DNA from: Magallana gigas
Taxonomy: Eukaryota
DNA: 64,000 bases
NCBI RefSeq assembly: GCF_963853765.1
Contig: NC_088855.1
Span: 50,096,001-50,160,000, forward strand
Reading direction: 5' to 3'
Part shown: piece by piece, positions 47,201 to 49,680 of the stretch
Numbering within the stretch: position 1 is the stretch's first letter
Layout: every line of letters starts with the position of its first letter
Position numbers and translations under genes: made by a program
The notes under the pieces: generated by a model
Seen by the model: only the letters and a program-made list of their open reading frames with translations
What the model was told of the DNA's origin: nothing
Databases searched by the model: none

Positions 47201-47924
47201 TATTGATGAAACTAGAAAGTTACAAGTATGGAATTCTATGGAAATCATACATTTGCGAATTTATTTTTCTTTGCTCTAACACATCCTTGGGCAAATATGT
47301 TTTGTTTTCTCTACACAAGCAAGTAGGTACATGTACTTCAAATCCTGTAAGCATTGGTATATAAATCAACTGGGCTCCAAACAGTCAGCAAACAAATTTA
47401 CTATAATAGTAAATAGATCTATGTAGAGATATTAATAGTCCATATATCAATGTCACTAACTGTAACTGACAGTGCTGATCTTTGTATAAATGTATTTACA
47501 AAGTTTCCATTACTTGGATATAATAAGATTAACAAAAAGTAGTTCTAAACTAGGAGTAAAATATATATTATAATCATAATGATTGATGAATATCATTGAT
47601 ACATACATGATGAAGATATAACAGTTATTACATATTAAACACCTGAAGTGGGTCGAATATTTTTGCTAAAAAGTTTAATCAATACCTGAACTCTACAGTT
47701 CCAACAGTTGTGCTTGCCAACATTGGAGTAAACAGAAAATAATTCCTTGGACTAATTACCACCACATCGAACAATTTTTTATCAATATTCCTGAGCAGAC
47801 TGTATCCTCCCCATCCTGTCCCTAGAATTACTAGTTTCTTTCTTCCTGTCTGGGTGGCAAATGTTTTGGAAAGCAATCCTGATTTTAATGGGAAACACTT
47901 CCTTAGACTAGACAAATGGGACAT
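44253..47924 (-). CDS. Type II (alternative, rotenone-insensitive) NADH:quinone oxidoreductase, mitochondrial, Ndi1/Nde1/plant NDA-like, 435 aa, 8 exons
   Basis: Exons 47924-47686, 47183-46958, 46851-46681, 46416-46257, 46120-45990, 45880-45773, 45246-45105, 44383-44253, phase-consistent. Basic, acid-free presequence. FAD motif ILGTGWGG; [28 protein letters not shown]; NADH motif [15 protein letters not shown]; VYALGDCA; quinone motif AQVAERQG; C-terminal [33 protein letters not shown]. Confidence 0.93.
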
Positions 47925-48147
47925 CTTCTCTTGGCTTACACTGAATTTGATTCACTGTATGGTTCGTTTTTCAATAAAACACTCTCTCAGTTTTCATTCA
48001 CAGTACCAGTAAAATGAATATACAGTTTGCAATCATTGGTAACAAGAACTGTTCACAAATCTCGATATTATCAATATTGGAAACATATAGCACCTTTTTC
48101 ATGTGTTCATCTGTAAAGAGAATAAAATTTCTATGAGATTTAATATC

Positions 48148-48675
48148 TTAAACTTTTTGCTCCTCTTTCTTTACTTTTCTCTTATCCTCTGGGGCATTTG
48201 GGTTTTCTCCTTGATAAAACCTTTTCAGTAAGTCAACTGCCCTCTCTTTCATTATACCCCCTATGCACTGAAAAGAAGGACCAAGACTTTCAAGACTGGC
48301 ATCATGAATAGAAAGAATGGACCCACAGCCTCCAAAACGCTCATTATGACATCCAAATATTACCAGGGGAATCCCAACCTGCCTCAGAGCACCAGCACAC
48401 ATGATGCACGGTTCTACAGTGACATACAAAACACTTTTACTAAACACTAAGGCAGAGTTTATATCCTGTTCTTTACTCCACTTCAACACCTGGTCAATGG
48501 CAACAATTTCAGCATGACGGGTGGCATTTTTTGTTTCGTTAACTTCATTCTTTCCTACAGCAATGATTTTATCTTCATACACAATTATACACCCTACAGG
48601 AACCTCTCCAGCTTGTAAAGCTTCTTCTGCAAAGTTAAAAGATCTCACCATCCAGTTTTGCCGAATATCGTCCAT
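48148..48675 (-). CDS. ADAT2: tRNA-specific adenosine-34 deaminase catalytic subunit, 175 aa, single coding exon
   Basis: [42 protein letters not shown]. Acceptor AG at 48684-48683, upstream donor GTAAGT at 49247. Confidence 0.93.
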
Positions 48676-49247
48676 TCTCTCACTTATTGAAAAACAAAAG
48701 AAGAAAGAAAGGGCATTAAGCTATAAAACATTTACCGGTACTTATAACTGGAATCTTGGATAATGACCTTTACCTGATCTAGACAAGATGTAGAATTTTA
48801 GGACGACTAGTATGTAAATTAATCATGCCTAACTTTGTTTCTTAAAAGTAATACAATAAAGGTAAGTTTGACACCAGTACAATCAAAATATTTAACCAAA
48901 TAAAACAATGTCAAGAGGTGATGATAATGATCAAATAGCATGTCAGATTAGGGTGATGACATAGTTGATGATGACTGAATAGATTTATTCATGATTTTTT
49001 TTGAATTGGAATATATTCAGCTACAAATGGATAGATAATATTTGAACTGATCGGCTAAGGCATATGCTTACACCTTCCAGAGATCAATTTTTGTTAAAAC
49101 AAAATGAATTTGTCGGCTAAAACTGGTATCTGAATTTTTTTAACAACTGATAAATTGATTAAAAAAATAAAAAATCATGTAGACATTTAAAAACGATTTC
49201 TTAGAAAAAGATAGCATTGTAGAATTTTGAAAAGGTAAAGGACTTAC

Positions 49248-49680
49248 CTGTTGCAATACTTTGTAATATTTTGCCAGTAGACTGTAGAGTCAAGTTCAAA
49301 TATATTGCAAAATATCTCATCGGGATCGGCCTTCAAAATGCAATCAGAAAAGTTTACTTCAACCTATTCGTTTGTTACAAAACAGATGCACAAAACAATC
49401 TGAAACTTTGAATAACATTAAAGCTTAACATAAATAAAATTTTAAGGCTAGCATGAAGACCAATTAAGAAACGGATACATGTACGACTTAACAACTATTA
49501 CCACTAAAGTTATGACGTCACGCATTTTTCAGCATAAGCAAAATTTACTGACGTTACACACACAGAAAGGCAGAGGGAATATCAAACTTTACCTGTTGAC
49601 AGCATGGATAATTAAATATCTCATTTCTTGTTGATTTTCAGAAGATAACTTCCTGCACAATGAATACATTTGTCGTAAGT
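49248..49680. promoter_or_regulatory. Putative bidirectional promoter and non-coding first exons (ADAT2 minus / zinc-finger gene plus)
   Basis: Minus-strand donors at 49247 and 49592, plus-strand donor GTAAGT at 49676, palindromic CRE TGACGTCA at 49513-49520. Confidence 0.5.

Follow-up and report, generated by a model that had tools for sequence, protein, structure and literature searches.

In a 64,000-nucleotide (nt) window of the Magallana gigas genome (NCBI RefSeq assembly GCF_963853765.1, contig NC_088855.1, positions 50,096,001 to 50,160,000 of the forward strand; oyster coordinates below are window positions), the gene for ADAT2, predicted to be the catalytic subunit of the tRNA adenosine-34 deaminase, lies just upstream of the gene for NDH-2, a predicted type II NADH:quinone oxidoreductase, with both genes on the minus strand. 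RNA contigs join a single non-coding leader exon either to the intronless ADAT2 open reading frame (ORF) or past it to NDH-2, and other contigs give an unbroken RNA path through both ORFs. These junctions, together with same-strand transcription, the single-copy status of both genes, and a gene order that recurs on a contig from another organism, lead us to a model that we regard as probable although well short of certain, in which the leader, ADAT2, and NDH-2 constitute one transcription unit and the choice of splice site sets which protein is made.

Splice junctions and read-through RNA

The TAA stop codon of ADAT2 (48150–48148) is separated from the NDH-2 ATG (47924) by a spacer of 223 nt (48147–47925). 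These positions agree with the original prediction, which was made from the sequence alone and which had also reported, correctly, that AATAAA is absent from the spacer; an ATTAAA (48139–48144, minus strand), a candidate signal, is the one near-canonical poly(A) hexamer between the ORFs. An acceptor AG at 48112–48111, preceded by a tract with pyrimidines at 12 of 14 positions, lies 37 nt past the ADAT2 stop, and a weaker acceptor AG is found at 47942–47941. Upstream, a GTAAGT donor begins at 49247, making 49248 the last base of the leader exon, and an acceptor AG at 48684–48683 starts the ADAT2 exon at 48682, with the ATG 7 nt further on. All of these splice sites, like the end of the first NDH-2 coding exon at 47686, stand where they had originally been placed.

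The RNA data covered positions 44200–50100 and came from two raw poly(A) runs, X21 and X22, and from contigs of two oyster libraries, X4 and X5, that belong to separate studies; all were searched at 92% likeness. The raw runs supplied only 36 (X21) and 127 (X22) reads, and the contig depths are whole-contig means that are poor measures of flux. Donor 49248 was joined to the ADAT2 acceptor side at 48682 in both libraries, at depths of 27.8 (X4) and 19.1 (X5). In X5, the same donor was also joined to 48110, at a depth of 30.3 and with canonical GT..AG ends on the minus strand. This second joint spans the entire ADAT2 cassette, whose ORF is unbroken, and removes it within a 1137-nt intron, the layout expected of a nested gene. 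Its shorter side consists of 26 letters, 4 of them ambiguous, which is the size expected for a 31-mer unitig bridging two branch points; because the same donor is re-used with a canonical acceptor, a chance alignment is very unlikely. At the level of contigs, the proposal that one leader is spliced either to ADAT2 or past it to NDH-2 was thus borne out, with the first junction in two libraries and the second in one. Two junctions to NDH-2 had been foreseen, however, and only the 49248-to-48110 junction appeared; X4, X5, X21, and X22 contained no joint from 49248 to 47940 and no other joint that used the weaker 47941 acceptor.

The contigs also reveal RNA that passes through both genes. Record 1 of X4 (2327 nt) runs from spliced NDH-2 exons through an unbroken segment (47684–48682), comprising the spacer and ADAT2, to the leader joint, and records 3 and 4 of X5 likewise give an unbroken, spliced path through both ORFs, with record 4 (48085–48684) extending at least 54 nt beyond the ATTAAA. 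Read-through RNA of the dicistronic type, known here from contigs rather than from single molecules, is therefore present beside the form that skips ADAT2. The original prediction had considered dicistronic or trans-spliced processing to be the less likely alternative; in light of the X4 contig, dicistronic RNA had been ranked too low, whereas trans-splicing is indeed unsupported.

Contig depths in X5 bear on whether NDH-2 has a start of its own. The NDH-2 contig (depth 55.5) stops at a branch point at 48110–48114, into which two paths lead, one with ADAT2 skipped (depth 30.3) and one unbroken through ADAT2 (48085–48684; depth 19.5). The sum of these paths, ~50, is about the depth of NDH-2 and leaves little for a separate NDH-2 start, although mean depths of this kind make the comparison suggestive only. 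Stranded raw reads from X22 place ADAT2 and NDH-2 on one strand. All seven NDH-2 introns were seen as joints (GT..AG, minus strand) and had zero depth, compared to depths of 4–8 in both libraries for the partly retained leader–ADAT2 intron (48683–49247, minus strand; 565 nt, GT..AG), where unspliced contigs cover 48763–49277 (depth 8.1) and 48655–49123 (depth 4.3). This difference fits an alternatively used intron within one unit.

In the model that we favour, a promoter zone at ~49.6–49.7 kb would drive the unit and would also fire in the opposite direction into a neighbouring zinc-finger gene, and the pre-mRNA would open with the non-coding leader ending at 49248. Pairing of donor 49248 with acceptor 48683 would produce an mRNA with the intronless ADAT2 ORF first, which would end near the ATTAAA or continue, correctly spliced, through NDH-2. 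Pairing of the same donor with acceptor 48111 would instead discard the ADAT2 cassette with the 1137-nt intron and yield an NDH-2 mRNA whose 5' untranslated region (UTR) of 186 nt would be rich in upstream ATGs. ADAT2 would then be a same-strand gene nested in a 5'-UTR intron of NDH-2, with the choice of 3' splice site deciding between the two proteins. The corresponding 5' UTR segment (47925–48110, minus strand), which starts at the ADAT2-skipping acceptor used in the X5 joint of 48110 to 49248, contains five upstream ATGs; several had been predicted, including the first, which would open the exon with a mini-ORF (ATG-AAC-ACA-TGA, or M-N-T-stop). In the read-through form, NDH-2 stands behind the 175-codon ADAT2 ORF and the five short upstream ORFs, and established knowledge suggests that it would probably be untranslated and that the RNA should be a likely substrate of nonsense-mediated decay. 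The strong context of the ADAT2 ATG (A at −3, G at +4) makes leaky scanning to NDH-2 unlikely. By this reasoning, most or all NDH-2 mRNA may come from the shared promoter, NDH-2 would be silent in read-through RNA, and the choice between acceptors may be regulated.

The two genes, their conserved order, and their neighbourhood

The ADAT2 coding sequence (48675–48148, minus strand, in the exon that starts at 48682) encodes 175 amino acids (aa) and has no intron. The protein scores beyond the curated Pfam thresholds for a CMP/dCMP-type zinc-binding deaminase domain (PF00383, 81.4 bits with a cut-off of 25; PF14437, 91.5 bits with a cut-off of 27). Residues H54, A55, E56, P89, C90, C93, K165, R166, K167, and K169 are invariant across 13 aligned ADAT2 proteins and make up the H-A-E and P-C-x-x-C zinc motifs and the basic C-terminal tail. 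The oyster protein is ~60% identical to vertebrate ADAT2 and shares a 90% cluster with XP_011418327 (tRNA-specific adenosine deaminase 2, Crassostrea gigas), and a search of the whole 564-Mb assembly returned this single ADAT2-like locus. Judged by its sequence, the intronless ORF is ADAT2, with predicted activity as the catalytic subunit of tRNA adenosine-34 deaminase, which would convert A to I at tRNA position 34 in partnership with ADAT3. Both ADAT2 and NDH-2 are already annotated in oysters. We rejected the idea that ADAT2 had been lost from Crassostrea annotation by absorption into the NDH-2 5' UTR, as the entries XP_011418327 and XP_022342037 exist. The C. virginica annotation includes ADAT2 isoforms of 98 and 113 aa (P0142 and P0143), both ending directly after ...GALR; a GC donor (CTGAG/GCAGGT, 48380–48390, minus strand) spliced to the 48110 exon, which opens A-TGA, would yield that end. 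No joint from this donor to the 48110 exon was seen in the oyster RNA data.

NDH-2 has eight coding exons, which sum to 1308 nt and encode 435 aa plus a stop codon. The coding part of exon 1 (47924–47686, minus strand), which specifies a presequence-like N-terminus and the first GxGxxG motif, is joined in RNA to 47183. Coding exons 2–8 (44253–47183, minus strand) are defined by RNA joints, GT..AG ends, open frames, and matching phases, and occupy 47183–46958, 46851–46681, 46416–46257, 46120–45990, 45880–45773, 45246–45105, and 44383–44253. Family searches were made exon by exon. Exon 1 matched the Protein Data Bank (PDB) entries 5jwa (Plasmodium NDH2, 1.9e-14) and 4g6g (yeast Ndi1, 7.6e-14), and exon 2 matched the same chains. 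Exons 1–6 matched PF07992 (Pyr_redox_2) at the colinear profile positions 2–49, 72–126, 142–161, 158–196, 218–255, and 257–277, respectively, with only exon 2 exceeding the cut-off when searched singly. GxGxxG motifs were read in exons 1 and 3, and the last exon scored 42.5 bits for NDH2_C (PF22366, cut-off 27.7) at the only NDH2_C locus in the genome. These similarities identify the gene downstream of ADAT2 as a putative NDH-2, a type II NADH:quinone oxidoreductase of the Ndi1 type.

Two observations concern the 3' part of NDH-2. Record 1 of X4 continues past exon 7 without splicing and reaches 44742 in the last intron (44742–45244, minus strand), whereas X5 uses the joint 45104/44382; the X4 form past exon 7 is either intron retention or an alternative 3' end and would truncate the NDH2_C domain. 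In addition, a G/C homopolymer run and short repeat within the last intron (44631–44661; window 44457–44661) draw many reads and contigs with unrelated flanks, show loose ends in all four runs, and probably represent a dispersed expressed repeat.

Metagenome contigs were scanned with the ADAT2 alignment, and the matches were mostly bacterial TadA-like loci. Contig L002 (Ga0224501_10017385, 5500 nt) was the only scanned contig with NDH-2 downstream of ADAT2. Its ADAT2 ORF (4478–5014) is intronless and encodes 178 aa, and the spacer of 159 nt that follows has one upstream ATG, an acceptor-like AG 13 nt ahead of the next ATG, and neither AATAAA nor ATTAAA. NDH-2 exon 1 of L002 (ATG at 5174) shares 77% identity with its oyster counterpart and ends at the same intron position, with GTGAGT following. 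Upstream of ADAT2, on the opposite strand (1–669, minus), L002 carries a counterpart of the oyster zinc-finger gene, with identities of 67% and 91% over two exons and with exon boundaries identical in the two sequences. The gap between this gene and ADAT2 is wider in L002 (3.8 kb compared to ~1.3 kb in the oyster) as a result of retroelement integrase-like ORFs, which lie between the two genes at 1850–2510. CCAAT and TACGTCA motifs occur 30–60 nt ahead of the L002 ADAT2 ATG.

Gene order, orientation, an intronless ADAT2, and a short spacer are thus common to the oyster and L002, a single contig. The nearest named relative of L002 ADAT2 is that of Bugula neritina (66%), compared to 54–59% for bivalves and gastropods, indicating that the organism is not a sampled mollusc; by this measure, it may be a bryozoan. 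Only the coding parts of the oyster and L002 DNA align, and the leader and spacer do not, so that no conserved non-coding element can be claimed. The eukaryote-like contigs L003–L007 had no NDH-2 within their short flanks and have no bearing either way. Because the same block is present in L002, the three-gene block, the intronless ADAT2, and the short spacer are probably old, and this recurrence in an unrelated contig, together with the presence of predicted junctions in RNA contigs, indicates that the arrangement is more than chance. An origin of ADAT2 as a recent retrogene was rejected, as the gene is single-copy and is intronless in the same position in L002.

The shared leader (49248–49664, minus strand) has an exact 3' end, set by the donor after 49248, and an approximate 5' end. 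It is longer and more complex than the original prediction, with a leader start at 49363, had allowed. Record 6 of X5 spans 49248–49664 unbroken, and a 215-aa gene model from the same species (P0124; UniRef A0A8W8KDQ3) divides the leader into two exons, 49623–49592 and 49330–49248, ahead of the ADAT2 exon; taken together, these records suggest that an internal leader intron (49591–49331) may be optional. In the window allele, an upstream ORF of 36 codons begins with the ATG at 49320 and extends, in another frame, across the ADAT2 start; in the P0124 allele, a one-base difference (49301–49330, minus strand) makes this ORF an in-frame N-terminal extension of ADAT2. One X4 contig aligned from 49335 upward and had 77 unrelated letters on its low-coordinate side, with no splice signal there; this break could be a structural allele or a chimera.

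Head to head with the leader, and overlapping it, a C2H2 zinc-finger gene was followed over 49576–50563 on the plus strand. Its exon 1 (49576–49674, ATG at 49660, 5' end approximate) is spliced to 50029, as judged by a joint (49674/50029) with GT..AG ends on the plus strand and by reads with the first mate on the minus strand; a contig end at 49576 is flanked by adapter, and a loose end occurs at 50029. Pfam and Atlas searches with this neighbour returned generic C2H2 look-alikes only. Because the zinc-finger gene starts on the plus strand in the same zone as the leader, with reads in the opposite orientation, the two units probably diverge from, and overlap at, one bidirectional promoter zone. 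A perfect TGACGTCA (a CRE/ATF-type palindrome) is located at 49513–49520 (minus strand) in this promoter/leader zone, with a second ACGTCA nearby.

One transcription unit or separate genes

Several observations weigh against a single unit governed by splice choice. The skipping junction comes from one contig of one library, X5, and the 49248–48110 junction is absent from X4. More weakly, the raw runs, with 36 and 127 reads, include neither leader junction; they also show no transcript starts and no poly(A) ends, and so speak neither for nor against a spacer promoter. The depth of X22 is 2.95 over NDH-2 exon 1 but 0.72 in the spacer bin, a drop that a start within the spacer would also explain. 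With its five upstream ATGs, the 48110 leader is badly suited to translation. One contig that covers both genes is no proof of a single molecule, and the data place no transcript start or poly(A) site.

Much of this evidence would suit two ordinary tandem genes, with a promoter for NDH-2 lying within the spacer or the 3' portion of ADAT2, and with the skipping junction and the unbroken contig as minor read-through by-products of a weak ADAT2 terminator. The leader–48110 junction is missing from X4, X21, and X22, the X22 depth drop lies upstream of the NDH-2 ATG, reads in X21 fall within 47943–48139 with none over ADAT2 or the leader, and a spliced 5' UTR with five upstream ATGs would be unsurprising in a by-product. 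We nevertheless consider the tandem arrangement unlikely, if far from negligible. At a depth of 30.3, compared to 55.5 for the NDH-2 body, the X5 skipping junction is not a trace product, and tight spacers (223 and 159 nt) and gene order have been kept across distant lineages with large genomes, suggesting constraint on the unit itself. In addition, no core-promoter feature was conspicuous in the spacer by reading, with no formal eukaryotic promoter scan run. If both proteins were instead made from the leader–ADAT2–spacer–NDH-2 RNA, with NDH-2 translated by re-initiation or internal ribosome entry, the unbroken and fully spliced path through both ORFs in X4 record 1 and X5 records 3 and 4 would be its message, and the lack of a canonical poly(A) hexamer in the L002 spacer would be in keeping with it. 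Re-initiation is inefficient in eukaryotes once an ORF of 175 codons has been translated, however, five short upstream ORFs lie between the cistrons, a dedicated splice form that skips ADAT2 exists, and the same reservation about contigs and single molecules applies, making a true dicistronic mRNA quite improbable in our judgment.

The only support for an operon processed by spliced-leader trans-splicing, at acceptor 48111 or 47941, is that the short spacer separating these same-strand genes contains strong acceptors. No recurrent foreign letters or loose ends were found at 48110 or 47940, a comparison with low power in raw reads and adequate power in contigs, and the 48111 acceptor is joined in cis to 49248. 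We know of no report of spliced-leader trans-splicing in molluscs. With no foreign mini-exon at the NDH-2 acceptors, we rejected this mechanism, which would have to be regarded as exceedingly improbable. The single unit with alternative 3' splice sites remains our preferred reading, and it can be extended into a bolder proposal that is possible but doubtful. In this extension, ADAT2 and NDH-2 would form an ancient unit with obligate co-transcription that predates the split between molluscs and the lineage of L002 (a candidate bryozoan) and that shares a single bidirectional promoter with the zinc-finger gene. NDH-2 would have no separate promoter, and regulated selection between the 3' splice sites would trade an essential enzyme of tRNA wobble-inosine formation against an alternative respiratory enzyme that does not pump protons.

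Significance and comparison with known systems

Animal NDH-2 has been little studied, and it attracts attention as a means by which stress-tolerant invertebrates naturally bypass complex I. The presence of NDH-2 in some animal taxa has already been reported (Matus-Ortega et al. 2011, as cited in PMC10955580). We found no description of an ADAT2/NDH-2 pairing in the literature. If the oyster NDH-2 mRNA comes from the promoter of an essential housekeeping gene and arises when that gene is skipped, then NDH-2 would be controlled post-transcriptionally. Beside the cholinergic locus, this locus would also offer a second case, likewise deeply conserved, of an intronless gene in a first intron that shares a leader with its host, here with functionally unrelated products, and would bear on why such units persist, whether through shared regulation or through entrapment of a gene unable to leave without losing its promoter. 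For annotation, the existence of read-through RNA means that expression counts for oyster ADAT2 and NDH-2 are confounded.

Retrogenes that recruit a 5' exon and promoter from a host gene resemble this locus, in that an intronless ADAT2 ORF sits in a host intron and obtains the first exon of the host through a cryptic acceptor just before its ATG. ADAT2 differs in being single-copy, in being intronless at the same place in a distant invertebrate, and in having no poly(A) remnant; if retroposition ever happened, it was ancient and the parent gene was replaced.

The locus also resembles conjoined or dicistronic transcripts, with an RNA path over two complete same-strand ORFs, a short spacer, a weak or absent poly(A) signal, and downstream splice junctions that should expose the RNAs to nonsense-mediated decay. 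Conjoined transcripts are typically scarce and lineage-specific. The ADAT2/NDH-2 pair, in contrast, has a splice form that removes the first ORF and a linkage conserved far beyond one species. Polycistronic read-through loci have been described in Arabidopsis, according to one account (PMC9768141).

The layout of ADAT2 within the first intron of NDH-2 is the same as that of the cholinergic locus (VAChT/ChAT; unc-17/cha-1 in nematodes). As outlined in one description of that locus, a single exon within the first ChAT intron contains the entire VAChT ORF, and alternative splicing and several promoters make both mRNAs, in an arrangement kept from nematodes to mammals (PMC3053374). The oyster locus differs from this precedent in two respects and perhaps in a third: ADAT2 and NDH-2 have no evident common pathway, one acting in tRNA A34 deamination and the other in mitochondrial NADH oxidation; the oyster ADAT2 cassette ends just 37 nt before the downstream acceptor; and mammalian VAChT also has its own promoters inside the intron, which ADAT2 and NDH-2 may lack.

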